A stretch of 64,000 nucleotides of DNA from positions 5,828,001 to 5,892,000 of the forward strand of contig CM060732.1 of NCBI GenBank assembly GCA_030704615.1. The letters run 5' to 3'. Both the position numbers and the translations under genes were made by a program. The notes beneath the pieces are model-generated. The model was not told where the DNA came from. It made no database searches and saw nothing but the letters and a program-made list of their open reading frames with translations. Below are positions 6,270 to 48,039 of the stretch, one piece after another; within the stretch, counting starts at the first letter, position 1, and each line of letters starts with the position of its first letter. This DNA comes from Takakia lepidozioides (taxonomy: Eukaryota > Plantae > Bryophyta).

Positions 6270-6420
6270 CGAGAGGGGGAAACAAAGAAAAAAGAAAAAG
6301 GTTGGGGGGGGGAGTGACTGAGCAGCAGCAGCAGCTGCTGAGTACCACTTGCTCAGTCACCCGCCCGCCCCACCTTTTTTTGGGGGGGGGGGTTTCCTGA
6401 TCACTCCCTCTCTCTGTCCC
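6270..6420. repeat. Inverted-repeat junction site 1
   Basis: GAGTGACTGAGCAGC...cagctgctgagtac...TGCTCAGTCAC flanked by A/G and C/T tracts; recurs at 14175-14219 and 17079-17127. Confidence 0.8.
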
Positions 6421-6436
6421 TCTCTGTCCCTCTGTC

Positions 6437-6483
<47 letters not shown>

Positions 6484-6589
6484 TTTTTTCTTGCTACTCA
6501 CAAAAATAAACAAACCACAAGGGAGAGAGGGTGCAGAAAAAGTTAAAAAGAGAGAGGGAGAGGGAGAGAGCTAAAAGAGATGGAGAGAG

Positions 6590-8205
6590 TGGGAAGATAT
6601 TCACGTCATGTCAAGACATGGACAGGACCCATAAGGGTCATTGTCAATTAAAGACATAAACAACCCTGGATAGGGCACTATCTCACATTTTCAGTCTTGT
6701 CAAATCATCCCAAAAGACACCACCCAATCATCCAAGACAAAAAACAGGGTGGGAGGGCGGGGTTTGTTCTTGTGTGGGACAAGATAAGATATTGTTGTCC
6801 CTGTGCAGGCTGCAAGGCCTCTTGGTTCAGCCTGTACATATACCAGCCGCTTACCATTTCAGCCATTAATTATGGCAGGTCATGCATCAGCCAAGGTATA
6901 AGGACCAGCCTGCAGTTTGTCAGAATCTCAGTATGCCACCAAGCAGTCCAACTTGAGCCAGATGAAGTAGATTCCATATCATTTGTATTCACCCCGAGAC
7001 ATGTGATCATACAAGGCATCAAGGGAATGTGAATGCAGCCTGTCAAATTGCAGGTTCAAGACTTGTACCAACAAGTAGCATGAACAGCCGAGATCCAGCC
7101 TCTTTTGTATTAAAAAACAGATTGCAAGTCATAGGCCTAATGTCATGACAGATCCAAAACAATAGGTAGGATCCCATTGCAGCTTACCATCCTCATCCTT
7201 CAAGAGTTCCATGCTAAGACATGCAAAATACACCTTACTACGATCTAGTACACATCAGAAGTAGGCCTGAAAAGGAGCAGGGCAGTACCCTACCAGGCTG
7301 CCGCCTTAAACTTCAAGACCACCAGATCCATAGATACCCAAAACCGCCAAAAACATACCACCAAAAACCAGATCCTCTTTGGCCAAAATAACTTACAACC
7401 TAGCTTAATAATCCACAGGCTTTGTTGTCAAAGATCAAAAGGTAGGGTATGGTTTGTATGCAAGCCTCAGGAAATAGGCCCGTCAGGCCGAGCTGCGCAT
7501 CGGCGGCAGAACGACAAAGGCCAGAACGCAGGCTGTAGCATGTCAAGCCAGGGGCAGTCGGGTTGAAATCAGGGCTGCAGGCAGCAGCCACCTCACAGCG
7601 CACAAACCCCTAGGTCTCCTTAGCCCATATCCCAATCTGCATGCTCAAGAAACTTCAAAGTAGGTGAGGATCCTCACCTGGTCCCATCACAAGCCCCCAC
7701 AAAAACCAACAGGTTAGTGAGGATTGTGGAACCCCAGGTGAATCACAGACCCTCACACTTGTCATCAATGTCAACTAAGAAACTCAAAAGCAAGAGAAAG
7801 AGATAAGAACATGAGAATCCCTAAACTCCAAAGGCACCTTAAGCGATTGGGGAAGAGGGTTATGCGCCATCACCACCCGCAGCAAGCCGCCTCCACAAAG
7901 CACATAAGCAATGAAGCAAAGCAAGCACAATCGCAAGGCACTTGAAAGGAGGGAGAGAGCTTCCCATCATAAGCATCCTTGCTAAGCACAAAAAAAGCCA
8001 GAGGAGGGAAGATGCCACTACATTCATAGCGGTGTTTCCCGTTGCAAGAGAGACAAGGCGCCGCCTTCGCGCCCCCCCAGGCGCTCGTCTAGCATGGGTA
8101 CGACACCACAAACGGGGCAGCCACCGAAGCACGTCCGCCATAACACTCTCCTCGCGAGCTCAGAAGCACATCGCGTGCTTCTGACAGCGGGAGAGACGAC
8201 ATCGG
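6590..8205 (-). ncRNA. Structured non-coding repeat unit 1 (subfamily A), putative
   Basis: Shares a central stem domain (7636-7793) and a 3' hairpin domain (6590-6765) with other units; no conserved ORF. Confidence 0.55.
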
Positions 8206-8219
8206 GTTTTCCCCCGATT

Positions 8220-8725
8220 ATTCATCCATGGATGAAAAATAGTAGGACGCATCCGTATACCCTGACGGATTTCATCCGCAGCAAGGTTAAAAATAGGTTT
8301 TGGGGTAGGGGTTAGGGTTTCCACCGTAATTAATCATAATTAGGGGTAGTAAAGATCAATTCCAGGCCTTAATCACATCATCCATAAACAGATCACTTGT
8401 GTCAGGATGAAAAAGTAGGGAATATCATCCGTGGCAGCGCCTTACCTCCATCTAGGTAATTCTATTATTCCTCCCCAGACCATCCGGTATGGATAAAAAG
8501 AGTCAATAAAAGAGAAATGAAAAATTATCACCCTGGTAGTTTTTCATCCGGTACGGATGGAAAAACAGAATGTTGTTGGCAACCTCCATAGAGGTAATTC
8601 TTTTCTTCCATGGTGACTCATCTTGTATGGATGAGAGTCAATAAAGGAGGAAAGAAAAGTCCAAAAGAACCATCCTAGAGGTAACTCAGTGTCCATCCTG
8701 GTGGCTCATCCGGTATGGATGAAAA
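8220..8725. promoter_or_regulatory. Cluster of TCATCC-N5-GGATGA palindromes plus telo-box-like AAACCCTA (minus strand) upstream of unit 1
   Basis: For example tcatccggtacggatgg (8544) and tcatccggtatggatga (8707); gggttagggtttc at about 8310. Confidence 0.5.
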
Positions 8726-8785
8726 AGCCTGATAGAGGATGAGAAAACAAGAAGTCAACACTGATAGTAAACTGCCAATTCCCAG

Positions 8786-9066
8786 TAGCTGCTCAGTCAC
8801 TCCCCCTCCCCACCTTTTTCTTTTTTCTTTGTTGCCCCCTCTCTCCCTCTGTCTCCCTCTCTGTCCCTCTCTCCCTCCTTCTCTCTCTCTCTCTCATCTC
8901 TTTTGTGCTGCTCACAAAAAAAAAAAAAACCACAGAGGGAAAGAGGGGGTAGAAAAAATTAAAAAGAGAGAGGGAGAGAGTGGGAGAGAGTGGGAGAGGG
9001 AGAGAGGGGGCAACAAAGAAAAAAAAAAAAATGGGTTGGGGGGGGAGTGACTGAGCAGAGCAGCAG
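8786..9066. repeat. Short fold-back bounded by two junction half-sites (internally deleted, empty unit)
   Basis: About 65-bp inverted arms: gctgctcagtcactcccc...ttgttgccccctctctccctct and agagggagagagggggcaacaa...ggggagtgactgagcag. Confidence 0.75.
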
Positions 9067-9364
9067 CAAAATGTGGATAAAGCCCTGAAGCAAACACTTC
9101 AGGCCTGGGCCTGCTGCTGATAAGTTCAAATACGATCTATGAATGCATTGTTTGTTTTGCTAACCACTATGCAAATGCTCTTGAGGATGTTTGTTTAAAA
9201 GACATGGTTGCTTTTAAAACTTTCCAGCTGTTCTTGGGAACATATCTTGCTAAGTGGCAGATATATCTCAATATGGCTGAGAGATGCAATTACTCTGCTC
9301 TATGGAATATGAAACCAGTCTGTTTTGATGGTGATGGATTTTTTTCTTTCTATGATGAATATCT

Positions 9365-9548
9365 TACAATTCCCACCCTCCCACCCAGAGATTTCAGATA
9401 CCCTGAAGTCTTCATTATTCAATCAAATCGGATGCTATGTGTGAACGGAGATTTTAGATAGTGCCTTCTAAGGAGGCTGCTATGTCCTTTTCTGACAATG
9501 ACTTCAAAAGTCTTGTCTATGTCTTGACATGACATGAATATCTTCCCT
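9365..9548 (+). ncRNA. Inverted 3' hairpin domain, probably belonging to unit 2
   Basis: cccaccctcccaccc...gatagtgccttc-taa-ggaggc...gacaatgactt-caa-aagtcttgtc...gtcttgacatgacatgaatatcttccc is the same 3' domain in opposite orientation to units 1, 3 and 4. Confidence 0.5.
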
Positions 9549-9709: not shown

Positions 9710-11640
9710 CCATAAGGCAGCTTATAGGTCTGGGGTACCAGTACCTAATAGTTATAAGTGTGATTGCCCCATTGTTCCTGGTTCAAACACTATAACTAGG
9801 TAGCAGGTTATGTTCCCAAAATGACTGGCAGCATTTAAGCGAGACCAAGTCTGCTAGAGAGGCTTCCATAAAAACATTGCAAGGTACTTTTACTAAGCAA
9901 TGATTGCAGTAGCAGTACTATTTGAGTGTTTCCTAAGCAGAATCAGGCCTGGAGTTGATGTTCCAGGGCCTTATCATCATTCTGCCAAAGTAAGAAAAAA
10001 GCTCAAGATGTACATGTTTGTTAACAGATCAAAACCAACAGCATGTGGTAGCTTAAGAGAATGTATGTATTCTGAGGAAGCTAAATAAGCACTACCAGGC
10101 ATGATTTGAACATAAGCTGCATAAACCAGAGCTGTCTTGGCTCGCCAAAAGACAAAAAATAGTGCCTGGAAAAGGCAACATACTGCCTTGTCAGGCTGCA
10201 GCTAAGGAAAAAAAATGCCACAATGCGGCTATGTCAAGAAAATAGATACCTTTCAGTAGAATATGTGTATTCTATGAATGCTAGCATATGCCTGCCCTTT
10301 AATCATGTAAACTGAGTTGTCAACAACTAGAGAACAAGTTAAAGAGTACAAAATAGGTCCTCCCCTGATGTCTCATTGGAGTAGTAGTTGCATTCAGCAT
10401 CAGCCACATTTTATGCGGAGTTCTTCGCATCTGCAAGCTTCAAACATTATGTAAGGTGAAGATCCTCACCTATGCCCGTCCCAAAAACACCACAAAAGAC
10501 ATTTTGTGTGTTAGTGAGGATGCGTCGGGTGAGTAACAGACCTTCACACTTGCTATCGATGTCATACATATAATCTAAAGCAAGCATATGCAGGGAACAA
10601 AGCATTAAACCACCAAGACCTTAAAGGCTTGTGGAAGCAGCGAAGCCTGCGACATGGTGTCCAAGACGTACATTCAAACAAGTGCAAATAGATTGCTTTG
10701 CTGAAAAGAATGAAGAGTTTATCAAGTGAGAGAGACTCCCTGAAAACCATGCAGGTGCTGCAGCTTCATCAATGAGCATTCAAGGGTTCAGCTAGCAACC
10801 AAATTGATTGCTTCGCAGAAAAATAAAAAATAAAAAATGTAGGTACCAGTAAGGGAGTTGAAGATCCAGCCGCACTTGCGCATGAAAAGCCTGGTAATCA
10901 GACCTAAATTTCAGATGCCAGGCTGCATAGCCTTCAATGTGCAGGTCCAGAAGCATCAAAACATCCTGGATTCATTCAATTCCAGTCGCATTTCCAGTGT
11001 GAAGACATAGCCGCCAATGCACATGGCAATTAGGCCTAGAATCAGGCTGCAAAGTCTTCATAAGGCCTCACCATAAGCATGAAATGCTTCAGATTCCTGC
11101 AGTAAAAGCACTTAGCAGCCCCCATTCACACCAGCAGAAGCTCACATCTGAAATCAGGTGTGAAGACATAGCCGCCAATGCACATGCCGAGACCAGCGAT
11201 TAGGCCTGGAATCAGGCTCAAATGCTTCGGATTCCTGCAGTAAAAGCACGTAGCAGCCACCATTCACACCAGCAGAAGCTCGTGCAATCAGGTATGAAGA
11301 CATAGCCGCCAACGCACATGCCAAGACCAGCAATTAAGTCTGGAATTCTGCTGCCAGGCTGCAAAGCCCTCATTACGCCTCTCCATAAGCACCAAATGCC
11401 TTGGATTTATGCAGCATAAGCACTCATGCGATCCAGTAGCTCAGGTATGAAGACAGAGCCGCCAAAGCACATGTTGAGACCATCAATTAAACCTGGAATT
11501 CAGCTGCCAGGCTGCAAAGCCTTCATTACGCTTCTCCATAAGAATCAAACGCCATGAATTCATGCAGCAGGAGCACTTAGCCGTCACCATTCACTCCAGC
11601 AGAGCTTAAGCACGAGCTTCGTGCAAAGTGATAAGGCCTC
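9710..11640 (-). ncRNA. Structured non-coding repeat unit 2 (subfamily B), putative
   Basis: Central stem domain at 10428-10585; upstream palindrome cluster at 11650-11785. Confidence 0.5.
10997..11600. repeat. Tandem repeat, four diverged copies of about 130-160 bp
   Basis: gt(g/a)tgaagaca(t/g)agccgccaa...gcacatg at about 10997, 11158, 11291 and 11444. Confidence 0.85.
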
Positions 11641-11879
11641 ACTCTACGCGATTTCATCCAGTGTGGATGAAATCGTGTATAACTGATAACAATAATAGGC
11701 ATTCATCTCTGATGTCATCCTGTATGGATGTCATTCGTCCACAATAAAAACCTAGGTACAGCATTCATCTGGCATGGATGAAGCAAAAAAAATGGATCAA
11801 GGATTAAGTTGAATCATACCAATTTCAAACCACATAGGCTTAAGAAAAAATGATTAGATCCCGATCCGATAGCTGGAGA

Positions 11880-13770
11880 GAGGGAAGATACTATGTCTTG
11901 TCGGGACATGGACAGGACCAAACATGGTCAATGTCAATTTTTACGACAAATCAACCTCATGAAGAGGCATTATCAGTCAAACTCCACTTCTAATCAGATC
12001 TTATGATGACCTCCATTACATTTCAAAGACAAAGAATCTACCTGGTAGATTTCAATGACAAGAAAATACGGGTGGGAGGGTGGGATTACTTAGAAGATCC
12101 CCTCCTTATAATAATCCGGCTTTATATTCTAAGGAACAGTATGCTAAACAAGTGTTCAGCCTGTTTTTATGCCTGTTTTAGAATTATAAGCTATGGGTGG
12201 CATCTAAGCAAACAATTAAATGTTTACCTATATCATGCAATAGTACTGCTCATCTGGAACCCAAAAGTTCCAGCTATTTTCCATTAATCACACAACCGGG
12301 ATATTAAATCATCTGGTTACTTGACAAGATAACCAGTTTTTTAATAACAAAAACCCAAAGCTTATCTGCTACATTTTTAGAACTTCTTGTAATCATGACA
12401 CAGAGTCAAAACTCATTGCATTGTTTAGTAAGCTTGATTTCCCAGAACTGCTTTCTACTGCAGTGTTCTGTATCAGAATATGCCATAGCTAGCAAAAAAC
12501 ATAGCTATCTTTTTTGTAACATAAAATCCAGAGCCATGTTGTAGGTTAATCAGTCTTTGATTACCAAGCAACAGCAGGGGCTTCTCTTTAAAACAACCAG
12601 ACCTGGTTTATGTTTGGGGTCATTATGTTACAACCTTGACAAGGTGTTTGCACAAACACTGTATACAATCTGTAATTACAGAGTGACATGAAGAGGTAGC
12701 AGTTTACTTACCTTAGCAGATTGTATGCAAGGTAAGAAGGAAAGGGGGTTCAGACATCCACAGAGGTTCCATATATTGAGCATATAAAGGCATACAGGGC
12801 TTAGTATAAACCATATGCAAGCTCTGGCCCTCCCCTACCGTGTTGCTTGAAAGTGTACATATCAGAGTAGCAAATCGTGCTCTAAGCATGAAAAAAGAGC
12901 ATATATTTGGTCTGGAAAACCTACTTCCAGTTTAATATTTCAATGCAGCGGAAATCATAACCCAGAGTCCTTAATAGAATTCATGTGTTCTAAAAAGGCT
13001 CGCTAATGCACTTGCTGCTTCAACACATAGATAAAAGTTGTAAGCATATCCAGATTGGTCATGTAGTGAGGCAAAAATGAGACATCTCCCTGGATAATCA
13101 GCTGATGTCGATGTCACTTCACTTGCAGGTTTGTCATCAGATTCAAGCTTCAAAAATCACATTAAGTGAGGACCCTCACCTGGTCCCATCACAAGCCCCC
13201 ACAAGAACCAACAGGTTAGTGAGAATTGTGGAACCCCAGGTGAATCGGGTCTCACGCTTGTTATCGTTGTACAACATGAGTTCTAAAGCAAGAATCAGTT
13301 CTAAACACAAGCAAGGTTATCCACAACCTTAATCGATTGCGGAAGAGGACTCGACATCGCTCCAAGCACTTGACAATCAACAGCACAAACAAGCAATGGT
13401 TTGCTTGAAATCTATGCGCATTTTAACAGGTGAAGAAACCCCCTGAGTTTTTATGAGCAGTGCTGAAACTTAATGATCCAGAGAGGATCTACAAGCAGTC
13501 GGGCAGCCTAAGGTAGATTGCCCGCCAAGGGAATAGGTCACCATACTGAGGGAATTGAAGCTCCGCCGCCGTTACGCCTCCCAAGGGAGATGAGAAAGGA
13601 CTGGAATCTTGCCAGAGTACTTGTAAACAACATTGAAGCGTCTCCATAGCCATCAAAATCATAAAATTCGTGCTAAGAGATCCCTCTGACACCATCACTT
13701 CATCTCCCGTAGAGAAAACGCACAGTATCGTGCAAGTTTTATGGCAGGAGAGGAGATATGGCAAACCATT
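11880..13770 (-). ncRNA. Structured non-coding repeat unit 3 (subfamily A), putative
   Basis: 3' domain 11880-12088; central domain 13140-13292; palindromes 13774-14005. Confidence 0.55.
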
Positions 13771-14099
13771 GCAATTTCATCCATGTGGGATGAAAAATAA
13801 GAAATGAAAAGTGAATATTCCCTTGTTGTCATCGCCATGTCATCCAGCAGGGATGACATCCTAAAATCGATGACCAGAACCTGGCATTCATTAGGGTTAG
13901 ATATAAATGACCTTAATAATCCAAAGGAACCAGGTAAAAAATGATAACCATAATTAACATTTAATGGAATTCATCCATTATTAACTATATCCGGTATGGA
14001 TGAAGATAGCATAAAGTTAATTATAGTTTAGTCAAAAATTACCTTAGTACCAAACCCTCTGGGTTATGGAATAGGTTACCAACAGGATCCATGTACAGA

Positions 14100-14270
14100 G
14101 GGAGAGAGAGAGGGAGAGAGAGGGAGAGAGGGGGCAACAAAGAAAAAAAAAAAAGGAACGTGGGGGGGGGTTTTGACTGAGCAGCTGCAGCTGCTGACCA
14201 GCAGCTGCTCCGTCACTCCCCTCCACTTATTTATTTATTTATTTTAGTTTCCTGATCTCTCCCTCTCACT
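14100..14270. repeat. Inverted-repeat junction site 2
   Basis: gactgagcagctg-cagctgctgaccag-cagctgctccgtcactc with the same flanks as site 1. Confidence 0.8.
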
Positions 14271-14391
14271 CCCTCTCTCTGTCTCTCTCTCTGTCTCTCT
14301 CTCTCCTCTCTTTTGTGTTGCTCACCAAAAAAATAAAAAATAAAAAAATGGAGAGAGGGGGTAGAAAAAGTTAAAAAGAGAGAGGGAGAGA

Positions 14392-16355
14392 GTGGGAAGA
14401 TATTCATGTCATGTCAAGACATGGACAGGACCCACTAGGGTCATTGTCAATTAAAGACATAAACAGCCCATGACAGGGCACCATCTAACACTTCCAATCT
14501 TGTCATAGCATACCAAGTGACATCACCCATTCGGTCATGATAATACAGGGTGGGAGGGCGGGGTTTATTCATGTTCAGATTCCTGACATGTACCCAAGTG
14601 ACCCTCTTGCACAATACAAGTTAAATTGCAGCCTCAGATTATATCATCCGTAATTATCCCAAGATATGCATCATGCAAGATATCATGGGCATGTAAGAAC
14701 AGCTTGCCACATTACAGATCCAAGATTTGTATACACAAGCATCTTGATGGACTAGCCTGTAGTTTATCATATTCCAAGCATGCAACCAATTAATCCTCTT
14801 GGGCATGACAAAATATAATGCAGCCTCACTCTTTACCATTTGTAAGTAACCCAAGACATGCATCATGCAAGGCTAGCTCTACTGGACCTTTGCCAGAGAT
14901 TATTTGCCTTATTTTGCCATCAGACCAGGCACCTGCAATGTATGATTTATTTTTTGGCCAAGTGGGCTTGGTCTCGGGCACTCAAAGTGTTTGTGTGTCC
15001 ATATCTTGAATCTATAATATGGCAGGCCTTTCTTCCATGCCAAGATGCCTTATATGATGCATGTCTTGGGGCAATTATACATGGTATAGAAGGAAGTTGC
15101 AGTCTGTCTTGTCATGCCCAAGAGGGTTACTTGGTTGCATGTTTGGAATCTAATAAACTGCAGGCTGGTCCATCAAGATGCTTGTGTATACAAGTCTTGA
15201 ATCTGTAGTGTGGCAGGCTGTTCTTACCTACCCAAGGGGCCTTGCATGATGCATGTCTTGGGGTACTTACAAATGGCAAAGAGTGAAGCTGCAATATGTT
15301 TTGTCATGCCCAAGAAGTTTACTTGGTTGCATGCTTGAAATCTGATAAATTGCAGGCTGGTCCTCCAAGGTGCTTGTATGAACATATCCTGAATCTGTAG
15401 TAGGGCAGGCTGTTCTTACCTACCCCGCCTGAAAGAGGCCTGTCATTGCCTAATCAGGCTGTCATCTTTAAAAACAGGGCCTCCTCTTCCTTAGAACCTA
15501 ATAGCCATTGATGCCTTACCCATAAACCATAACTCCTCTTTAAGGCCAAAACAGTACCTAGCTTAATAATCCACAGGCAATGCTGTCAAAGATTCAAGAC
15601 AAGGTAAGGTCCAGATGCTGGGCTTCAAGAGACAAGCCTGCCAGACCGAAGTGCTCCATGAAAGGCAGCACAACATAAGTCAAAAGTAAGCATCAGCATG
15701 CCAAACCAGGAGCAAGCAGGCCGAAATCGGGGCTGCAGGCAGCAGCCATGTCAAGACGCCATACACAATAGGTTCCCTTTGCCCACATCCATATCTGCAA
15801 GCTCAAGAGAATTCAAAGCAAGTAGGGATCCTCACCTAGTCCCATCACAAGCCCCCACAAAAACCAACAAGTTAGTGAGGATTGTGGATCCCCAGGTGAA
15901 TCACAAACCCCTACACTTGTCATCGATGTCAACTAAGAACCTCAAAAGCAAAAGAGAAAGACATAAAACAAAAGGAACCCTAATCACCAAAAGCACCTTG
16001 AGTGATTGGGGAAGGTAACTATGCGCCATCGCCACGAGCAAGCCACCTCCAGCAAACAAAGGAGAAGTGAAGCATATAAACACACTTGCTAGGTTTAAGA
16101 AGGGAGAGAGAGATACTTCCCAACACAAGCGCCGCTGCAAAAATTAAAAGCCAGAGGAGGGAAAGAGACGATGCATTCACAACATTGTCTCCCGCCTATA
16201 AGAAAAAACAAAGCGCCGCCATTGCGCATCCCCTGGAGATCGCCCAGCACGGGTACGATGCAGCAAACAGGGTAGCGGCAGAACGCAGACACCATAACGC
16301 TCTTCCCGTGAGCTCAGAAGCACTGCTCGTGCTTCTGACGGCGGGAGAGACATCT
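14392..16355 (-). ncRNA. Structured non-coding repeat unit 4 (subfamily A), putative
   Basis: 3' domain 14392-14566; central domain 15792-15950; palindromes 16372-16980; closest relative of unit 1. Confidence 0.55.
14655..15425. repeat. Long inverted repeat (arms about 215 bp) combined with an approximately 193-bp tandem repeat
   Basis: 14658-14872 is the reverse complement of about 15047-15265; 15047-15240 is repeated at 15240-15425. Confidence 0.85.
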
Positions 16356-16371
16356 TAGGGCTCTTGCCCGA

Positions 16372-17615
16372 TTTTTCATCCGTGCAGGATGAGTAATCAA
16401 CATCATATTCCTTAAAACCCGATGGATGTTATCCGTAGCTAGGTTAAACAGTAGGTTTTAGGGTAGGGGTTAGGGTTTCACTCCTTAATTAACCATAATT
16501 AAGGGTAATTAACATCAGTCCAGGGCCATCAGAAGTTGTACATTTCATCCGGTTCAGATGAAAAAATCATTGTGTTCATCCGTTGGAAAAAGTCCATCAG
16601 TAGGATGAAAAAACAGTAGATAACATCCAAGGCATCGGTTTTACATCCTAACAGGTAATTCAACATCCCAAAAAACAAATTGCCTTATCCAGTACGGATA
16701 AAAAAGCAATAAAAGAGGAATGAAAAAATTATATCCTGTCATTTTTCATCCAGTATGGATGGAAAAATAGGATGCCAGTGGCAACCCCCACAGAGGTAAT
16801 TCCTCATTCTCTGGTAACTCATCCAATATGGATGAAAGTCAATAAAAGAGGAATAAAAAATCAAAGACTAAGCTTAGAGGTAATTCAGTGTCTACCCTGG
16901 TAGTTCATCCGGTATGGATAAAAAATTGTTATAGGGCAGGTGAAAAAACTGTCAGAGTCCATCCGGTATGGATGAAAAAACACGAATACTGGCATTGATA
17001 AAACCGGCCAATTCCAAGGAGGGAGGGAGACAGAGGGAGAGAGGGGGCAACAAAGAAAAGAAAAAAAGGTGGGGGGGGGAGTGACCGAGCAGCTGCAGCT
17101 GCTGAGCAACAGCTGCTCAGTCACTCCCTACCCCCCCCCATATTTTTTTTATTTTTTTGTTTCCTGATCTCTCCCTCTCACTCCCTCTCTCTCCCTCTGG
17201 AAACTGGGTTTATGGAATTGTTGTCCCGACTTCCATCTTTGAAAATTTTGAAAAATTGGGTTGCAGGGAATTTTGGATGTTTTTCATCCAAAATACAATT
17301 TTTTTTCCCTAGTGAAACATTTCTTCACTAAATACCTATGAGTTGCAAAACTCCCGTCAGTTTTTATTTTTTCAATCCAACCTGGATGAAAAAAGGACTT
17401 CATCTGACAGGACCTAAATACGGGGCAAGACAGGTATAGAAAAGATGTTTCAAACCCTCGATGTTTTTCATCTAACCTAGATGAAATGTGGACTGCATCC
17501 GTCGAGTTCAAGACAGGATGAACGCACGATGTCTTTCATCTTCCGCGAATGAGAAACGGACAACGTCCGTCGGGCGTACAGGGTGGCGGATGTTTTTCAT
17601 CCTGAGAAGGATGAA
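16372..17615. promoter_or_regulatory. Palindrome clusters between divergent units 4 and 5
   Basis: About 10 copies of (T)CATCC-N5-GGAT(G/A) on both sides of junction site 3. Confidence 0.5.
17020..17200. repeat. Inverted-repeat junction site 3
   Basis: gagtgaccgagcagctg-cagctgctgagcaa-cagctgctcagtcactc. Confidence 0.8.
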
Positions 17616-17649
17616 TGACGGGCCAGACAGGGGAAAACCCTGCGCAACC

Positions 17650-19505
17650 CTAATGTCTTTCTTTTTGCGCTGCGAGAGCGCGCGCGATGGTGGCTTGGGA
17701 GGAGCGATGGTGCTCGTGCTGCAGATACCTTGAGCTACCAATCCTTGAGTGTTTATGGCTCCTGTGAGCGCCGCCTAGGCGGGCTCTTTAAGGCGATGGC
17801 AGTGGCTTAGAGATGAGGGAAGATTCACTGTCTCAGTTGTCTGTTTTTTTGCTGCACAAGGGAACCGCGGCAGTGATGGCAGAGGTACCACCTGCATGCT
17901 TATGACGTTTCCCTAGGAGCCCTCCTCTGGATCTTTGATGAATGGCGGCGTCTTGGTAGAACAAGGAAGTCTCTCTCCCTCCCTTTATAAACCCTACCTT
18001 TTGAGACCAAGCTCTTTTTTCTTGTGCTTGGCAAGACTTTGCTTTGGTTAAGGTAGCAGTGTTGTGGTGCTGGCGGAGTCCTCCCTGCACGGTTAGGCTT
18101 GTGGAGAGATGACGACTCTCCCCCAAACAGTAAAAAAAAATCTTTTTTTCTGTTTGTTTTTGCTTCCCTGCTTTCTTTGGCATTCTCTGCGCTTAGATTG
18201 AAGTGTATTTGACCTCGATAGCAAGTGTGGAGGCCTGCTACCCACCTCGTGCATCCTCACTAACTCACAATGTGTTGTGGTTGTTTTTGGGACGGGCACA
18301 GGTGAGGGCTTCCACTTAATATTTTGATGTCTAGGTGTTGTTGGATGCCAAGTGAGATTGCAGTGCAGGGGAAGGAATCGCTTGCCAGGGACTCATCTTA
18401 AAATGTTGAAAAACTAAACTACTCTATGGTTTTTCTTGATCCTACCTCTTTCCTTCCTTTATTTTTGAAGAACAAGTGTAATGCTTTCTACAATGGGCTA
18501 TTTTCAGCCCAGCCAGTGGAAGACCTCTGCTTTGTTGTGACAGCCGGGTTTATGATGGCTTGTGTGAGAGACACACATCTGTTTTCCAGGCCCTAGTTTG
18601 CTTTGCTTACCTTATGGTAGTTGGAAACAATTTGAGAGGCTGCAAGGAACTGTTTGTTACAGCTTTTCGGGTACCCATGTTGGCCCCTGTTATGTTCCAA
18701 CCCGGATGGCTTTGTTAGCTAGATGCTTAGGCCAGGGTATGGTGAAGATTCTGCCTGTGGATATTCGGCTAACAATGAAATATGGCAGCAATATATAACC
18801 GGTAACTGGTTTTTGAGGCAGTCAGGGTGGTCAAGTGGAAATACACCCCTGGACATGGTGTAATGATATGGTCAAGTGTGGAATGATGTGAATAGGGTGT
18901 ACTGACAGTATTAAATACTGTCACATGATGTGTATGCAGTCCTTTATCTTTACCTTGCTGGGTCATGAACTTTGATTTTCAGCTGTAGCAAGAAATAAAG
19001 GTATAGGGGTATTCTGGAAAACTTACCAGACATATCCACATCCCCTGTGGGAGCAAGCTGTGCTGCAGACCAGTCTAAACAAATACTGGCAGGGCAAGGT
19101 ATTTAAATATGTGATGTCCAAGTGTTCTTTTTGTTCTTTTTGCTTTCTGAAAAAAACCCTCCATGACACCCATGGGTTTGAGTAAGTATGCTTGGATTAC
19201 AGCTTGCGGACAGTAAATCTCCATTTAACCTGCACCACATCAAGGCCAAAATATGGCCAAACACCCGCCATCCCACCCAGACCTCTAAATGTGTATCATG
19301 ATCATGACTGGTGGTCAATTAGCATCAGTGGCATACTCTTTGGGTTATGAATAATACTGACATGAACACATTACTGTGCATGGATGTAATTCTGGATTTT
19401 CTAAGCTTGATGATTGATGGATGGTGCCACTGTTAAGTGGCTGATATGTCTGTTTATTCTTTTATGACAACGACCCTAGGGGTCATGTCTTTGTCTTGAC
19501 ATGAC
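17650..19505 (+). ncRNA. Structured non-coding repeat unit 5 (subfamily B), putative, divergent from unit 4
   Basis: Central domain 18190-18330; 3' domain 19262-19505, clipped by the Gypsy LTR; palindromes 17270-17615. Confidence 0.55.
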
Positions 19506-20462
19506 AAATGCTATTCGAAGTATCTCTGTGTAGAGTGAACGTGAGATGGTGAGAATGTGTATCATCTCATAATAGTTCTTATTTTCTCTTGACTACCATC
19601 TGCTTGTATGAACCAAGAGGCTTCAGTCCTTTCAACTAAGATCTTTTATGCTTAAGAGACTGTAGATTGGTCTTAATCAATAGGATTAAGCAGTCTGCAA
19701 GGATATGGCTTCATCCGACGTTCATGGTTTAGCTATCCTTAAAACGATTACTTCGTAATCGTTTCTGAAAGCATACCGTCGGACAACCTCTGTTGCATGT
19801 CTTAGGAAATGGGCAGTAGTGTTAATAGCTTGTTTTGTCTAAGTCATAAACCAGCGGTTAACATTTGGCGACCATACTGGGGACTAACGGTATGTTGAGT
19901 TCAAAAGTACTCAAAGAAGGATGGTTACTCAGTGATTTCTTGAAATCACGACAGAACGAGTCAACAGAAGCAAAGGAATGGAAAACATTCCTGAAAAATT
20001 TTCATGGTTTACCAAGAGCAATACAACAGAAAATCTTTATGTCAATCGTGAAAGAAGATGACAAATGGGGATTGAAGGGAGGAGTGATCAGTATTACACG
20101 AGCACCTTGGGAATGTAGGATTAGAAGTGAAGAGTGGTTGTCTCGTCTAGCTCTATTGATTACTCTAATCCCAATCAGAAAAGTTTGTTACACTAGTTAT
20201 ATTTTCAGAGAAGGATGTTCAAATTATGAATATTGTCACACGATCACAGAGACAGTGGAGTACTGGATACCCAAAGACTTATTGCAAGTTAGATACACTG
20301 AAAAAGATAGATGGTATTATTGTGCCCATTAAAAAAATTGGTGATCAATCAGTAAAAAGGAAAATTAAGTTGTAATATGGATTCTTGCAAGATAGGATGA
20401 GTCTTGAAGAAAGGGTAGAGACACTATAAATTTTCTTTACTGACATACCAAGACTGTTTTAA

Positions 20463-26115: not shown

Positions 26116-26254
26116 AAGGCTACCAGGGATACATGACAAAACCCTTATACATGATTTATACCCAACGAGAAAGATCAAACGAAGAGGAGGAGCGCGAAAC
26201 CACCAAGCCTACTACATTCATCACGACACGGTGAATTAGCATGTACTAAGACAA

Positions 26255-29200
26255 GTGGCAACACGAATTCAGGGCACCACGACGGCTAGACCACCATTTA
26301 TCTGGAGGACAACATTACCACCCCGTATACCGTATGGTGAACCGTGGCCAGCACATATGCCCTACAGAACAGTGAACGAATGCGAAACGGCCAACGAGTC
26401 ACTGCTTGTGTTAAATTCCGAGATGTACGCTTTAGATCACCCCACCGACAGTGGTAATCATACACCACTACCCTTCGATCATAACACAGAGGCGGAACGA
26501 CGGCGCAATCCAACGGATTGCCAAAAGACGGCGGACGATAAGGGCAAAGCCATTAAACCAAGCTACAAGTACTGCGCTAACGCCGCCCGTCTAAAAACGG
26601 ACCACATACCAAAGTGGATGAACACAACTCAGAGGGATGAACATAAACTGACCGAAACTGGACAATCATCAACGACCATCAGTTTTAAACAAAACAAATC
26701 ACGAAGAAAAAACCAACGGAAGAAAATCAAGCACAAAAGAGATGAAGTTTTCTCAAAACCGTTACCTGAGGCTAAATGCTTCTTGGTAAGCCTGGGCCCA
26801 ACAATTAAAGCTAACCACGCTTTAAACCTAGGCAACCAGCAGGACAAAATTATCTCCACGAGAACCTCGAGAGAAGTTAGAGGAGAAACCTACAGAGATG
26901 AACCCCTACTTAAACCCATGAGCGAACTCCTCACCTTCTCTTCCGCAAACTGGAAATTGTTGTATACACAACTTCCAGTGTGCTTCATACTTCTTGTGAT
27001 ACAGGAATTGGTACTCCAATTCCTTACAGCAACCGCGAGACTAAGAGAAATGGCAGGCACCAAGCGGAAGGCACCAAGTTCTTATGCGCAAGTCAATTTC
27101 AAAATCAGCCCAGCGTTGCGGAAGATTGAGCAGGACACAGAGACACAGGAGACGTTGGACAGTCTTGGCCTGCGATACTTCATCACCACGATGGACTGGA
27201 ACCTGAAGCACGACAAGCTATGCAGGGAGTTCTTGGAGAATTACAACACCAGCACTCGGAGCACAAATGTCCACGACACGCACATCCTGCTGACAGATAA
27301 GTACTTGGCGGAAGTATTTCACCTTCCCAGTCTGGACGTACCACCGCACACCGGCAAACCTCCAAGGTTTGTACTTGCAGATTTGTTTGAGAATCTCAAC
27401 CAAGCAGATCAAGGCTACACATGCAGCCACAGCAAAAACCATGGCTTCAGGAAGATAGCTCCAGTATTTAGCACATTGCTTTGCCTCAGGCAAAACCATA
27501 GCCACTGTACCAAGGAGCTAATCGACCAAGTGTTGATTTGCTTCAAAGGGAAAATCGTGAATTGGGCAAGCTTCTTATTGAAGAAGTTAACTCAAGAACT
27601 GACCAGGTTGACAAAGAAGAAGAAGGAAGCGACTGTTACCATGGCAACTCCATTGTTACTCCACATGATTCGACACATTGTACACCTAACGGCCGAAGAG
27701 CAAGCAACGTTGGGAATCATGCAACGGGTAGATACAATGGAGGAAGAAGGAAGTGAGACGGCAGCATGTCAGGAAGAAGAAGAGGGTGGACTTGCAAAGA
27801 GAGCCCGGATCAACGAAGCAACCACAAGTGCAGCAGTAGAGGACATCATCAACTCGACGGCTGATTCCCCAGTACAAAGAGAAATGGAGAATCAACAGCC
27901 AGAAGGAGGGTACAAACCACAGACCAACGAAGCAACGCCCATGGAAATTAGCCATGGCAACACCGAAGCACAACAAGCAGCACACACAAAGGCCACACAA
28001 TCAGAGGAGGGAGACATAGTGGCGCAGCAACAGCAGATGGTGCAACAGGCACCCGACCAGCAGCACCAGATAGTACAATAGACACCCGATTAGCAGCAAC
28101 AGCAGATGGTGCAAGAGGCACCGAGTCAGCAGCAGCAAGACAGAAATTCCAATTTGGAACTACTACTAGCACAACAAGTTTTAGATACAACAGCATGGGA
28201 CACAGGGTTGGAAGAAGCACCACAAAATGTCATTCTGTAGGCAATACAAGCATTGGGGCAACTGACAGTTTGTATGGACAGGGCCAAGGATTACATCAGT
28301 CCGGAAAACCTGAACATGATCTTAGACCACATCAAAGAGAAGCACCAGAGGGAATTGGTCACTGCAAGAACAATATGTAACCATGAGGTTACAATTGCAG
28401 CATTAGAAGATCAAAAGTCAACCTTACTCCGCCAATACAACACATTGGCACAACGCAAAGATGAGTGGGAGCAAAAGTGGGAAAGACAGAGAGACGAAAC
28501 ACACCATGTCCAAGCCGACCTCGATGCAGAGCAAGAGAGATCTCGAAAAATAGAGACAGGGGTGGAAACACTCACAGGGCAGGTGCAAACATTAAAGCAG
28601 CAGGTGGAGACACTCAAGGAGCAGCTGAGGACTGCCAGAGATCAGGGAACCAAGTGGCTCAACAGCAACACTGCACTGCTGAAGCAAAGGGAGAATGCTG
28701 AGAGCAGGTTGTTTACCGCCACCACAGAAAGAGACATTGCCATGGACAATGAACAAGAATGGAAGCAGCAGCTGGAGAAGCTGACATTGCAAGCAGGGTT
28801 GGATGCAACAGACGCAGCCTTAGCCAGAGCCTGGTTGAATGAAGGGAGTGAATTGGAGATGAAGAAACTCAACAGGGCAATGGTGAGGCACATGAAGTGC
28901 CAGTTGGCGAAATTGGTGACAGACATTCATGATGAGTTCCTGCCACCAATTCCAGAACAAGAGGAACTCATGGACGAAGAGGATCAAGAGGAGCAAGATC
29001 ACAAACGAGAGACACCAATACAACAACAACAACAACACCAACACAAACACCACCAGCAACACAACCACCACCAAACCAACAGACACTGGTACAGGCCACA
29101 GCAGGGCCTCAAGAGGTAAACCCTGTAACACTACCAAGTGTCCTGGTAGCATCAACTTCAGTAGCAGTGGATGATTTCCAAATCATGCCATGCAAGCAGG

Positions 29201-29988
29201 ATGTGGAGTGGTTAAAGTATTCAGAAGAATACTTTAAAATGATGGTAGTACAAGCCCACCAAATCCCAGAAATACTGGAGAAGATTTTCAAAACCTTAAC
29301 TCCCTGCAAATCATTGGGTCAATTGCATCTTCTCAATCAAACTCTTATTCCTCTGAGATATAGGATGAGACCACTGGCTAAGGAGGAGACATGGTCAGGG
29401 GCAGAATTGGTTGAATTCTGGCGCCAAGCTCCTTTAGAATACAAGGAGCTGGTAGCTTACATGTGGGCAGTGGGGCAATTGAAGATTAGTCCTACCCCGG
29501 CAGTAACCTTCGTGATAGGATGCCCAAGTTTTTATATTGGCAGTTACTTGTACCGCATGTTCGTGACAATGAGGGGAAGCTGGCAGCGCTATGAGAATAT
29601 TGAAAAAGATACTCACTGGGAATTACCCAAATTCCACCCACCAGAGAGAGTCACATGCACTTCAACATATATGAATAGGCCACTTTATGCTGAAGCATGG
29701 CGCCAGGCGAAGGACCACTTTTCACCATTGGTATTGGACAGAGACCACCCTTTCAGAGAAACAGGGGTCCAAGCTGTTAATTGGTTAATGGGCAGCAGGG
29801 CAACAAAACACATTATACCCTGGACCAAGGAGAAGCTGCAAACCTACCGCGAAAACTTGACCAACAAAATCGATATGGTACGTGGGGACGGGATAGCAGA
29901 ACTCCCCGATGAAAAAAGCTGGCCTACTCACAAACCAGAGGAACAACCAGACAGTGACGATAACAGGAACAAGAAGCTGCCACCATGA
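26255..29988 (+). CDS. Sense-strand accessory ORF(s) downstream of pol (608, 288 and 273 aa; probably one broken gene starting MAGTKRK at about 27049) with a central coiled coil
   Basis: Long open frames between integrase and PPT; homologous blocks found in the element at 35-38 kb. Confidence 0.7.
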
Positions 29989-30505
29989 CAATCCTGGGAC
30001 GCACTTCCTACCTCGCAGACAGGCATGCCACCACCTTACATCCCCAAGAGATACAGCAAGTACAGGAACTGACAAAATTGTGCGGACACAATTTCAAAAG
30101 AGGGGGGGGGGAATAAATGATAACGGCTATGCTACGAGGGACAGACAACGAGGGTCGCAACGGGACATACTGGGTAGTGATGGACGTACACTACCCAAGC
30201 CACGGGCAGAGACGGCTAAGTACGCGGTACTTAGCCAATGGCGGGACAAGGGTACATTACCACGAGAGCAGTAAGGGGTAGTGTAGTAGCCGTGAGCCGT
30301 GAACCACGATATCATACGGTCACGATAGCATCGGCTTTAACCAATAGAGGGAGTAGTGGACCATTTACCACTATGGCTCACGACCACTACAACGAGCCAC
30401 TTTTAGCAAACCTTTTAGGTTGCCTAGGTAGTTAGGCAAACGATCATTAACGACCGCAGGCTGTAACGGCTCTTTCGAGCATAGTATAAAAAGACTACAC
30501 GCAAC

Positions 30506-31355
30506 CACTACAATAGATCGCGGTATTTATGACTGTATATATGACTATTCTGCAGTCATAAACAATACATATGACTTCTATGACTGTAAGTCGTGCAAAC
30601 CAAGTCAATACAATGAGTACAGAATGGTATGGTCCGGATGACTACAATCATATGAACCAAATGACATCTCTCACTGCAGTCATATATACCATACTGCAGC
30701 TGCCGCTGCCGCGCCACGTGGCGAGGCGCAATTGATTTAAAAAATTAAATTAAATTAAAAAAACTTTAAAAAAAAAAAAAACATATGTCAAACGCCGCGT
30801 CGCACCGCATTGTGCCATGTGGCATAATGCATTTATAATAATGAAAAAACCACGTGGCAGTCCATCTAGGGTACCACGTGCTATCCCTAGCTCGTCTACC
30901 AACCCTAGGGTCATCTTATCCATTTGATTGTACTTAGAGGAGTTTGAACCTGCAACCTCTTTACTATAAGAGTTATAGTTCACTACCTGTTAACCAATAC
31001 ACCCATTAGTCATTTATATGATCATATGGTGTTTTAATTGTATTATACACACCAAATTACAAAATCCCCAGTAGTCATCATGACTATGTAACCTCATCCA
31101 TGTACACTGTAGTCATGGAAATGACTATAAATGGTGAGCTAAATCTGGTCAATTGTCGTTGACCAGCCTTCCGCCCATTCCGGAGCCATGTAATCATACA
31201 TACGACTATTTAGATAGTCGTTCATATGACTACAGTCGTATGAACGACTGCGGGAGGTCAGTTTCATATAAAAACATGGTGCAGTCATGGTCAAAGTCTA
31301 GAAAACCATGACTACCACGGTTTGGTAGTCATAACTACCGCGATCTGTTGTAATG
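30506..31355. mobile_element. Non-autonomous CACTA element inserted in the 3' LTR
   Basis: TIRs CACTACAATAGATCGCGGTATTTATGACT and AGTCATAACTACCGCGATCTGTTGTAATG; 3-bp TSD AAC (30503-30505 and 31356-31358); many subterminal ATGACT/AGTCAT motifs. Confidence 0.93.
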
Positions 31356-31989
31356 AACTTAGAGGGTGTGCAGTATGAGTATCAGTGATCAATGTGTATT
31401 TAGATGGACTCAGAGTGATTCTGTGTACTTCTGTGATGATGTGACGAGCTCTGAAGTAAAGCCATGCTATTCGAAGTATCTCTGTGTAGAGTGAACGTGA
31501 GATGGTGAGAATGTGTATCATCTCAGAATAGTTCTTGTTTTCTCTTTACTACCATCTGCTTGTATGAACCAAGAGGCTTCAGTCCTTTCAACTAAGATCT
31601 TTTATGCTTAAGAGACTGTAGATTGGTCTTAATCAATAGGATTAAGCAGTCTGCAAGGATATGACTTCATCCAACGTTCATGGTTTAGCTATCCTTAAAA
31701 CGATTACTTCGTAATCGTTTCTGAAAGCATACCATCGGATAACCTCTGTTGCATGTCTTACGAAATGGGCAGTAGTGTTAATAGCCTGATTTGTCTAAGT
31801 CATAAACCAGCGGTTAACAGATAGCTTGATAATCCTCTATGGTACACCTTCCGAAGGATTTACTAATGAGCAGGGAGAGGTTACCCTTTTGGAGAAGGAG
31901 TCTGGTATGCACTCCCTAACGGGGTGAGTGCATACCACACTCACTCCGTAAGGGCCTGCCATACCAGGGGTTGGTTGGTGGGATTCCCT

Positions 31990-32464
31990 CTCTCTCCCTC
32001 TCTCTCCCTCTGGAAACTGGGTTTATGGAATTGTTGTCCCGACTTCCATCTTTGAAAAAATTGAAAAATTGGGTTGCAGGGAATTTTGGATGTTTTTTCA
32101 TCCAAAATACAATTTTTTTCCCTAGTGAAACATTTCTTCACTAAATACCTATGAGTTGCAAAACTCCCGTCAGTTTTTATTTTTTCAATCCAACCTGGAT
32201 GAAAAAAGGACTTCATCTGACAGGACCTAAATACGGGGCAAGACAGGTATAGAAAAGATGTTTTAAACCCCCGATGTTTTTCATCTAACCTAGATGAAAT
32301 GCGGACTGCATCCGTCGAGTTCAAGACAGGATGAACGCATGATGTCTTTCATCTTCCGCGAATGAGAAACGGACAACGTCCGTCGGGCGTACAGGCTGGC
32401 GGATGTTTTTCATCCTGAGAATGATGAATGACGGGCCAGACAGGGGAAAACCCTGCGCAACCCT
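31990..32464 (+). repeat. Near-identical copy of 17180-17651 (upstream region of unit 5)
   Basis: ctctccctctggaaactgggtttatgg...gggaaaaccctgcgcaaccct present at both sites with few differences. Confidence 0.92.
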
Positions 32465-32469
32465 TTCCA

Positions 32470-33770
32470 TGGCTCTGGCTTATCGTGGATCTGGCTTACC
32501 ATGGATCTGATTTTTCAGAACATAGTAACTAACATAGGCTGGAACAGATTGACATCATGAACCTGCTGAGAACTTATGTGGGTACCTTCATAGTTCAAGC
32601 AACTGCCATACCAAACAATTCACTGCCCGTGCAATATGTACCTTGAAAGAAACCAGCAGTAATCTTCCGAGTCAAAACAATATGCAAGGGTTTTCTTTAA
32701 AAACACTGGGATGTCCAAGAGTACACCATGGTACTTTTTAAGTTAAAACAGCAGAACCAGATCTGTTTTGCTTCAAGGAACAGCTCCAAAGACCATGTTT
32801 GGTAAGTTTACAGCGCCAGTACGCCATCTAAGAATCCCATCACTATGAAATGGTTGATCGTAGAGTAAATTGGGGATGTTTCAAGGCCCAGAGCATTAAA
32901 CTCAAAGAGCTCTGTAGGGTATCATAAACCAATCAGCAGAGTAGTTCCATACAGCCAAGGGTTCATATAGATGTTAGGGGTTTGTGAGGAAACCAGCATA
33001 CACCCCATGTGGCTCTGAAAACACAGTTGCAGGTTCGAGCAATCTAAGTTAAAACAACATACATGGGCCTGTTTTACACTTGAATGGAAGTTTAAAGCAC
33101 GTCCCTGTGGAAGCAGCATTCGAAGTAGTAAAGTGCCGCAGGGAAGTATGCAACATTATTCCCTCTTCTCTGCATCGTCCATATCATCTGCAAGCTTCAC
33201 AAATCAAATCAAGTGATGTCCCTCACCTGCGCCCGTCCCAAAAACCATCACAAATGACAATTTGTGTGTTAGTGAGGCTGTGCGAGGTGAGTTACAGGAC
33301 ATCACACTTGCTATCGATGTCAGAGATGATTCCTAAAGCAAGCATTAGATGAAAAGACAAGCAGAAGCAACATTTTCCAAAAACCTTTAAAGTTTGTGGA
33401 ATGAAAGTACTCTGTGACATGGCATCCAAGATCTGGCATTCAATCCAAGCAAACACAAAGGGTTTGCTGAAGGGTAGAGAGGAGCTTATCAACACCATTA
33501 AGCTTCCATAGATCCTATAGGGCGCCGCTGCAGCATAAACGAACAATGACCAATTCTCCATAAAGCACGGCAGCAGCTTGTCTGCCAGTTTGTGAATTGA
33601 AGATACCAGCATAGGAGCAGCAAATTCGGTTATAACCGCACCTCCCAATGAAATTGACAACGCGGAATCAAGCCGCTAAGTCGTCAAGCCGCCATCACGC
33701 AGCTCCAGGGAAAAACCAAAGCCCAAGTGTCGGGTTGTTAGGTTTAGAGAGGTGATCAAACACGCACCCT
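32470..33770 (-). ncRNA. Structured non-coding repeat unit 6 (subfamily B), putative, 3'-truncated
   Basis: Central domain 33185-33343 with a perfect GTGATGTCC/GGACATCAC stem; palindromes 33774-33950; 3' domain absent. Confidence 0.5.
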
Positions 33771-33962
33771 ACGATTTCATCCGGTCTGGATGAGAAATCG
33801 CATGTAGCTGATAGGTCATTTTCGTGGGATTTTATCCACTAGAGATGAAATTAGTAGGTTTCCAAGATATCATCCATTATGGGTGACAGGGATGAAAAAC
33901 CAACCATTCATTAGGTTTAAACCATAAGCTCATATTCAGGATAGATGAAATTTCGAACCCCT

Positions 33963-47989: not shown

Positions 47990-48039
47990 GATGGTGTCTG
48001 ATGGGGGGAAAGAAAGAAAGAAGAAAAAAAAAAAAACCT

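Follow-up and report, generated by a model that had tools for sequence, protein, structure and literature searches.

Structured RNA elements with covariation support are few in plants, and almost none of them come from non-coding genes of bryophytes. The closest described systems are two splice-gating elements, i.e., the thiamine pyrophosphate (TPP) riboswitch in THIC and the 5S-rRNA mimic P5SM in TFIIIA. In both, a covarying fold lies on or next to splice sites and its pairing decides which sites are available. Here, we analysed a 64-kb window of transposon-rich eukaryotic DNA (positions 5,828,001 to 5,892,000 of Takakia lepidozioides contig CM060732.1, assembly GCA_030704615.1) that holds an array of six diverged units, numbered u1-u6 by position. 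Like the THIC and TFIIIA elements, each unit carries a covarying fold on and next to putative splice sites. These known elements, however, are part of protein-coding genes, have a known ligand or partner and are covered by Rfam models, whereas the units are non-coding, multi-copy and without Rfam match, and their gating function is a proposal. The array looks like an undescribed structured-RNA family. We tentatively read it as a lineage-specific family of spliced long non-coding RNA (lncRNA) genes in which a hairpin gates splicing, and give this reading somewhat less than an even chance.

Other known systems share single traits with the units. Host genes of small nucleolar RNAs (snoRNAs) such as GAS5/UHG also lack a conserved open reading frame (ORF), show poorly conserved exons and carry their best-conserved segment in an intron. 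In contrast to these, the fold of the units crosses the intron/exon junction and thus cannot be an excised snoRNA; box C/D and H/ACA snoRNAs were also rejected since their boxes are not conserved. Introner elements of algae and fungi resemble the units in providing an intron-sized module (150-250 nt) with all splice signals, a stable predicted structure and AGGT at both ends. Introners are near-identical and scattered in unrelated genes, while the six copies found here sit at the same position of paralogous units, are old (61-89% alike) and show conservation about 45 nt into the exon, such that we discarded this candidate as well. Recursive splice sites of long animal introns (YAG|GUAAGU) have an acceptor directly abutting a strong donor, as does the YAG|GUGAGG that is invariant in all six units. 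They are, however, found in very long introns and leave no exon, whereas a contig discussed below continues at least 133 nt past the junction; to our knowledge, there is no plant example of such sites.

On the DNA level, macrosatellites like D4Z4 and DXZ4 are comparable in being multi-kb tandem repeats with their own promoter-like region, possibly at several loci, but their units are homogenised and those of the array align in no more than a few selected modules. The palindrome arrays seen in DNA transposons (VANC-type target motifs; Mutator-like elements with ParB-methyltransferase) are similar in placing palindromes of about 25 bp, probably landing sites of proteins, into non-coding repeats. 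Here, in contrast, no transposase or ParB-like gene is found in or beside the units, and the arrays are present only upstream of a transcribed-looking body. Literature on moss introners and bryophyte tandem lncRNAs yielded nothing comparable. The 76-bp repeat PpNATR76 of Physcomitrella, which derives from the intergenic spacer, is unrelated in size and layout (PMC6302065).

BLASTN comparisons of the region with itself and of the units with each other locate the six units and a seventh, partial copy on the + strand as listed in Table 1. A central core is common to u1-u6, and a C-rich box followed by a 3' hairpin block is common to u1, u3, u4, u5 and the partial copy. The core pattern CTCACTAAC..AGGTGAGG has six matches in the window and none in 100 shuffles, and a covariance model derived from the cores recovers the six known copies and no others within the 64 kb. 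For the 3' hairpin pattern, five matches are found against 0 expected, and the C-rich box CCCRCCMTCCCACCC has five exact matches. The six-unit layout proposed in an earlier sequence-only reading of this stretch is thus confirmed (six cores and five 3' blocks, with about 0 expected by chance) including the order of its parts. The same holds for the claim that u2 and u6 lack an in-line 3' domain, since neither shows a C-rich box or a 3' domain.

Core identities are 76-89% inside the subfamilies 1/3/4 and 2/5/6 and 61-70% across them, i.e., the two proposed subfamilies are real. Within the former, u1 and u4 are recent duplicates that are about 72% identical along some 1500 nt with the upstream region included, and 89-93% identical in the core. 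All other pairs are alignable solely within the modules. This is not what a homogenised satellite would look like, in agreement with the initial view that the array is no decaying satellite.

One architecture is observed in 6/6 cores, both in consensus (RNAalifold) and single-sequence folds (z-scores -2.0 to -4.3). It is composed of a 9-bp helix P1, a 5-nt bulge and helix P2, from which an internal loop leads to another helix. The small hairpin at the apex differs in sequence between the subfamilies but not in position. Within P1/P2, 95.4% of the cells (i.e., base pair instances in the alignment) are paired, and 7 of 18 pairs have both sides changed. When partners are slid, 37-51% of the cells are paired. 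The 3' domain shows a similar picture: four small helices with 96% of the cells paired and 6 doubly changed pairs, compared to 34-49% for slid partners. For neither domain does any of 500 shuffles match, a control to be read with the alignment size of just 5-6 sequences in mind and with the fact that related sequences can beat shuffles without any selection. The double changes of the core are independent of each other, being found within both subfamilies and even in the comparison of u1 with u4. That is, the stems of both domains are kept by compensatory changes (95.4% and 96% paired vs. 34-51% in the slid controls), as had been claimed from the sequence, and a common consensus fold is obtained for both. 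Between these two domains with repeated compensatory changes, about 1 kb is free to vary.

With regard to the folded strand, the sequence-only reading stated that non-Watson-Crick pairs are G-U on one strand only. For the core, this is largely correct for subfamily 1/3/4 (G.U 7 vs. A.C 1) and does not hold for subfamily 2/5/6 (2 vs. 3), which sums up to 9 G.U vs. 4 A.C pairs. The 3' domain contains 18 G.U pairs. Consensus energies favour the sense strand for the core (-26.4 vs. -17.4 kcal/mol) as well as for the 3' domain (-22.6 vs. -18.0 kcal/mol). Furthermore, the putative sense strand has a G+T content of 53-58% in all six bodies, including the oppositely lying u5. The best-conserved parts of the core are its unpaired stretches, namely CTCACTAAC, TTGKGAYGGG and AGGTGAGG.

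The "central domain" is no RNA domain of its own but comprises the 3' portion of a candidate spliceosomal intron and the beginning of the exon that follows. In 6/6 copies, the invariant CTCACTAAC (containing CTAAC) precedes an invariant AG by 36-42 nt, directly followed by GTGAGG. An AAG|GT, identical to the AAGGT motif noticed earlier, is located 148-249 nt upstream of this acceptor in 6/6 units. The base before the acceptor AG is solely C or T such that YAG is kept, and the C/T change of u4 also preserves a G.U pair. Thus, all six copies show AG before GT at the putative exon end as well as a CTRAY within 18-60 nt before YAG. Judged by sequence, AAG|GT, CTAAC and YAG|GTGAGG together form a complete signal set of a U2-type intron.

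The fold is closely linked to these signals. The 5' arms of P1 and P2 are intronic, while their 3' arms consist of the acceptor plus 15 nt at the start of the following exon. Since the arms pair across the intron/exon junction, the helix can be present in unspliced RNA alone. When folded, it buries the acceptor together with GUGAGG, which resembles a strong donor; part of the branch-site region is paired as well, within the apical helices. Beyond the junction, the exon stays conserved for about 45 nt, a stretch that includes UUUGA and CUUGCAG.

We also compared the array with contigs from two small sequencing runs that carry the same species label (2-4% of words; presumptive RNA, neither being listed as proven RNA). 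Over positions 14000-19999, contigs that are 90-99% alike span the unit bodies and leave out the spacers and the palindromes upstream. Contig depth reaches about 2800 at the u5-type core, which implies many paralogs elsewhere. Two contigs, one per run and one per subfamily, match the downstream exon of u4 and u5, respectively, and stop exactly at |GTGAGG. Their unmatched upstream parts share ..AGGAGAC..AAT.. and resemble the conserved end of exon 1. When searched for in the window, both upstream sequences are absent, i.e., the molecules stem from other loci. Such breaks are as expected for spliced RNA from paralogs, which is suggestive but no proof.

Upstream of the bodies, palindromes of the form CATCY-N3-11-RGATG are enriched, with 22 instances in the window vs. 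3.9 expected. Sixteen are directly upstream of the six units and a 17th (32282) is part of a duplicated copy of the u5 upstream segment. Each body is preceded by 1-5 CATCC-N5-GGATG palindromes, often within T5/A5 arms that extend them to about 25 bp, and near the units such arrays are confined to the upstream side. The telo-box-like AACCCTAA occurs in sense orientation upstream of u1, u3 and u4 (Table 1) and at 17646 at the start of u5, which accounts for 4/5 occurrences in the window (2.1 expected overall). Telo-box-like promoter motifs are also found at plant snoRNA and ribosomal-protein genes. As the motif is upstream of and not within the body, we rejected telomerase RNA as a candidate.

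The bodies start near ATGTC and continue with a nested 5' hairpin and a GNGUGAUGGYG motif. Short motifs common to both subfamilies are found in exon 1 as well as about 260-450 nt after the core. The subsequent middle of about 1 kb differs even between u1 and u4. The idea of a constant scaffold with variable cargo is therefore partly supported: the modules are constant, but the middle is better explained as an insertion-tolerating zone than as selected cargo, given its large indels (299-nt repeat in u4, 4 x 150 nt in u2). The former is an inverted repeat (14575-14873 / 15047-15345), 79% complementary and with a loop of 173 nt, which might give rise to long double-stranded RNA, and paralog contigs show the same fold-back. 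Concerning the C-rich boxes, the opposite strand of each features four G-triplets, i.e., a canonical G-quadruplex motif. AATAAA directly precedes the box in u4, and A-rich variants of this hexamer do so in the other units. The spacers between units contain two kinds of long hairpins, one with CT/GA arms and one with GTGACTGAGCAGC-ending arms around a CAGCTG-type centre. Between units, the similarity of these arms amounts to 75-95%, with two pairs at 93% and 95%.

No coding signal is observed for the units. A six-frame comparison of the units shows no similarity beyond the DNA level. The indels that distinguish u1 from u4 mostly have lengths not divisible by three, and the sole frame open across the core is antisense with nearly all or mostly non-synonymous substitutions. 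The open antisense frame across the u5 core has no relative in a large protein collection, and an exact-protein look-up of two unit ORFs returned no record. Pfam domains among 28 ORFs of the window are from retrotransposons alone (gag, aspartic protease, integrase/chromodomain), all outside the units; no Pfam scan was made of frames from the units themselves. The comparisons of the units are in accordance with the statement that no reading frame is conserved, and the six-frame comparison and protein search produced no protein match that would point to a decayed gene.

Known RNA families do not account for the array either. Rfam 15 at gathering threshold gives 0 matches in the whole window. At E<=10, applied to 14 kb and three short segments, nothing credible is reported for the core or the 3' domain (best 20.5 bits compared to a gathering threshold of 70), and the spacer palindromes show generic sub-threshold matches to microRNA hairpins. 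The family is thus as unrecognised as it was on first inspection. A tRNA scan of the window found none, and scans of Joint Genome Institute (JGI) metagenomes gave 0 hits each for the core pattern and the 3'-domain pattern. Among further candidates, a rolling-circle origin hairpin was rejected because the nonamer is outside the apical loop, and a Helitron because the bodies start near ATGTC and end with GACATGAC(A/G), with no CTRR.

Taken together, the earlier inference of non-coding RNA genes or cassettes is kept in that the units are non-coding and their stems are under repeated compensatory change, and is changed towards spliced lncRNA genes with a structured splice-site element. From what is observed, namely the modules and their arrangement, the covariation and the lack of coding, we infer transcription, its strand, splicing and the purpose of the gate as follows. 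The array would be a cluster of anciently duplicated, independently transcribed and spliced lncRNA genes in a seed-free land plant. The CATCC-N5-GGATG arrays, usually accompanied by AACCCTAA, may be the sites of a dimeric factor that form a promoter or enhancer. The transcript would begin near ATGTC with the nested hairpin and the conserved GNGUGAUGGYG, followed by the predicted U2-type intron of 148-249 nt, which opens with AAG|GU and places CUCACUAAC 36-42 nt before YAG. The 3' two-thirds of this intron would fold together with ~45 nt at the start of the following exon into an irregular hairpin of 105-150 nt, with P1 and P2 pairing across YAG|GUGAGG and the branch-site region partly paired apically. 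About 1 kb that tolerates any sequence, the C-rich box and the four small 3' helices would complete the transcript. Within the precursor, the folded hairpin could act as a splicing gate, i.e., it would hide the 3' splice site and GUGAGG such that the precursor stays unspliced. Once opened, it would permit splicing, with the result that the hairpin is lost and the new junction reads AAG|GUGAGG. Selection would then act on the precursor RNA with its gating hairpin, besides the promoter motifs and the 3' hairpin block, while the remaining transcript drifts or gains insertions, which would produce the look of a constant scaffold with variable cargo.

If real, this would be a compact natural system for studying how RNA structure gates splice-site choice in plants, and the models of core and 3' domain provide a family-wide signature for finding further members. 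A more specific variant seems rather doubtful to us: the product of these bryophyte-specific tandem non-coding genes may be a precursor-RNA switch, in which a single long hairpin comprises branch site, 3' splice site and the abutting strong 5' splice site (YAG|GUGAGG), and folding picks the unspliced, the spliced or a recursively second-spliced form. If true, the switch would be a self-contained structural splicing device with a zero-length-exon site, undescribed in plants.

Several observations weigh against gated lncRNA genes. The candidate donors are weak past AAG|GT (+3 to +6), with no +5 G in any copy, and the stretch before the acceptor is G/U-rich with no clean pyrimidine tract. The junction evidence consists of two loose contig ends, and no GT..AG joint is reported for the copies of the window. 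If the runs are DNA, the junction contigs represent intron-less DNA copies and expression is unproven. One 1.7-kb contig continues about 540 nt past the 3' domain of its paralog, such that the 3' hairpins may not mark the end of the RNA. For subfamily 2/5/6, the antisense strand of the core folds as well as the sense strand or better, which leaves room for selection at the DNA level. Finally, the spacers and palindromes are repeated along with the units, which also fits a mobile or satellite element.

Such an element, i.e., a non-autonomous mobile element or a multi-kb macrosatellite, is the most serious competitor, though we consider it unlikely. Palindromes, spacers, core and 3' hairpins would be cis sites that proteins encoded elsewhere read as DNA, single-stranded DNA or element RNA, and the transcripts would be those of the element. 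The transposon-rich setting, the repetition of whole units including their upstream arrays and the similarity of the spacer arms support this. Furthermore, a 56-nt inverted repeat (95% complementary) brackets u1 (6271-6326, 8788-8843), but no target-site duplication is found beside it and no unit encodes a transposase or reverse transcriptase. Since units other than u1 share palindromes with their neighbours, element termini cannot be set. The body of u5, which starts and ends with ATGTC / GACAT, is bounded exactly by two rearrangement breakpoints, another point in favour of an element. Contigs that are 90-95% alike, with the depths given above, imply many further copies; the near-total divergence outside a few modules is nevertheless unlike a recently active family. 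While the core of subfamily 2/5/6 folds well on both strands, strand composition and consensus energies indicate one transcribed strand. In addition, DNA-level sites leave the intron-signal set, the kept YAG and the junction contigs unexplained. If the units are a mobile element after all, a cis-acting core that mimics an intron would be likewise unusual.

The stems might also lack any RNA function, i.e., they could be DNA inverted repeats that are kept or recreated by template switching or hairpin-templated repair, with covariation as a mutational by-product. The region is full of long palindromes, both strands fold, and with 5-6 sequences the shuffle control can be exceeded without selection. 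This explanation is improbable, as template switching does not explain why loops and unpaired stretches are most conserved, templated repair would give perfect complements instead of persisting G.U pairs (9 in the core, 18 in the 3' domain), and the contrast between core (89-93%) and flank (about 70%) in u1/u4 argues for purifying selection. We regard as quite improbable a non-autonomous element of the long terminal repeat (LTR) type, arranged as an LTR-internal-LTR tandem array. In this case, P1/P2 would be a tRNA-independent self-priming duplex in the style of Tf1/sushi, joining the RNA 5' end with a primer-binding site after the ..CA of the LTR, and the GA-rich spacer arm would be the polypurine tract. 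With its two stems and the folded segment between them, the long-range duplex is similar to the primer structure of Tf1, CA directly precedes the 3' arm of P2/P1 in 4/6 copies, and GA-rich tracts are present downstream of the 3' domain. Yet u2 and u4 have TA instead of CA next to an invariant AG, which fits YAG better, and the junction contigs end with ..TTTTG(AG) or ..CAAT and not with ..CA. In addition, TG..CA termini cannot be assigned, a spacer closes the array at 6271 with no terminal LTR, and the upstream regions of adjacent units are unlike each other, in contrast to shared LTRs.

That the core is a small-RNA gene appears very improbable. It could resemble a spliced leader (SL) RNA or small nuclear RNA (snRNA), with the donor CAG|GUGAGG in stem I and an Sm-like U-rich site, or a microRNA precursor. 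Indeed, a strong 5' splice-site consensus lies inside the stem in 6/6 copies, followed by UUUGA or AUUUUUGA between helices, and tandem copies and a stable hairpin are given. However, an A-U4-6-G Sm site is found in about 3/6 copies while the others show CUUUGA, the leader would be about 100 nt long, and the junction contigs use the site as acceptor, not as donor. We further know of no trans-splicing in land plants. A plant MIRNA precursor was rejected in particular, since the best-conserved 21-mer contains a 5-nt bulge and a 5x6 internal loop, unlike a substrate of Dicer-like 1, and the core is matched by no snRNA, SL or MIR family of Rfam. That the units are protein-coding genes in decay is hardly conceivable. 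Each body has a conserved ATGG(C/T)G motif some 70-100 nt from its start as well as short open frames, some of them cysteine-rich; but the frames that follow this ATG bear no relation to each other or are shifted, u1 and u4 included, that of u6 stops after 3 codons, and the comparisons reported above (nucleotide-level similarity only, no relative of the u5-core antisense frame, mostly non-synonymous changes in the sole open frame of the most conserved segment) argue against it.

Table 1. Positions of the array features within the window; units, hairpins and introns are given on the putative sense strand.
Feature	Position	Strand	Details
Spacer beyond u1, array end	6271..6596	.	two successive long hairpins: CT-rich/GA-rich arms, then GGGG..GTGACTGAGCAGC arms, CAGCTG-type centre
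u1 body	6597..8205	-	5' nested hairpin, exon 1, candidate intron, unconstrained middle, C-rich box, 3' hairpins
u1 3' hairpin block	6597..6688	-	four helices; C-rich box 6747-6761
u1 core hairpin (P0/P1/bulge/P2/apical P3)	7640..7775	-	fold and covariance-model match (130.9 bits)
u1 candidate intron	7678..7837	-	160 nt; AAG|GT ... CTAAC ... CAG|GTGAGG
u1 upstream region	8206..8788	-	CATCC-N5-GGATG palindromes; telo-box-like AACCCTAA at 8312-8319
Junction palindrome separating u1 from partial copy	8789..9058	.	
Partial seventh unit	9060..9541	+	opposite orientation, 3' part alone; C-rich box 9372-9386, 3' hairpins 9444-9541
u2 body	9710..11640	-	C-rich box and 3' domain absent; 4 x ~150-nt tandem repeats at 10997-11603
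u2 core hairpin	10432..10566	-	candidate intron 10470-10619 (150 nt)
u2 upstream region	11641..11870	-	palindromes at 11655, 11716, 11766
u3 body	11887..13770	-	C-rich box 12070-12084, 3' hairpins 11887-11982
u3 core hairpin	13142..13274	-	candidate intron 13180-13327 (148 nt)
u3 upstream region	13771..14096	-	palindromes at 13778, 13841; AACCCTAA at 13891
Spacer hairpins, u3-u4	14097..14399	.	
u4 body	14400..16355	-	C-rich box 14548-14562, 3' hairpins 14400-14491
u4 core hairpin	15798..15933	-	candidate intron 15836-15996 (161 nt); contig break at 15835|15836
u4 upstream region	16356..17018	-	five palindromes; AACCCTAA at 16470
Palindrome common to divergent u4 and u5	17019..17199	.	
u5 upstream region	17172..17651	+	palindromes at 17469, 17598; 98% copy at 31985-32464
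u5 body	17652..19507	+	C-rich box 19264-19278, 3' hairpins 19409-19507
u5 core hairpin	18208..18339	+	candidate intron 18053-18301 (249 nt); contig break 18300/18302
u6 body	32470..33770	-	3' end truncated by duplicated segment 31985-32464
u6 core hairpin	33189..33324	-	candidate intron 33227-33384 (158 nt)
u6 upstream region	33771..33950	-	palindrome 33778-33792

Between u5 and u6, an LTR retrotransposon is located on the + strand (19508-31819), with 356-bp LTRs (19508-19863, 31464-31819) that are 97% alike and a gag/aspartic-protease ORF at 21984-23165. It starts exactly at the end of the last 3' hairpin of u5, and its flanks show no target duplication, which suggests a later rearrangement. 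A 608-aa Gln-rich ORF within the element (26255-28081) has no Pfam match. The upstream region of u5 is part of a 480-bp direct duplication (see Table 1), the similarity of which ends exactly at the start of the u5 body (..GCGCAACCCT|AATGTC). The second copy directly adjoins u6, which lies in opposite orientation, at its truncated 3' end. The resulting order is A-u5-LTR ... LTR-165 bp-A, where A denotes the 480-bp segment.

Just upstream of the array, an ORF at 605-1033 (+) encodes an integrase C-terminal SH3-like and a chromo domain (Pfam E-values 1e-12 and 2e-10), i.e., the end of a chromovirus-type Ty3/gypsy element. The ORF at 51487-53280 (-) has a weak aspartyl-protease match in Pfam and, in the one frame scanned, no match to a methyltransferase family at E<=0.01. 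Just past the array, about 15 tandem copies of the 10-bp unit CTGTGNCNGG are located at 34583-34740. An AT-rich block at 48004-49560 (GC 34%) is composed of tandem and inverted repeats that are 70-88% alike with a period of about 113 bp. Finally, a 400-bp dispersed repeat, unrelated to the units, is present at 2245-2648 and 42683-43086 with 86% similarity.

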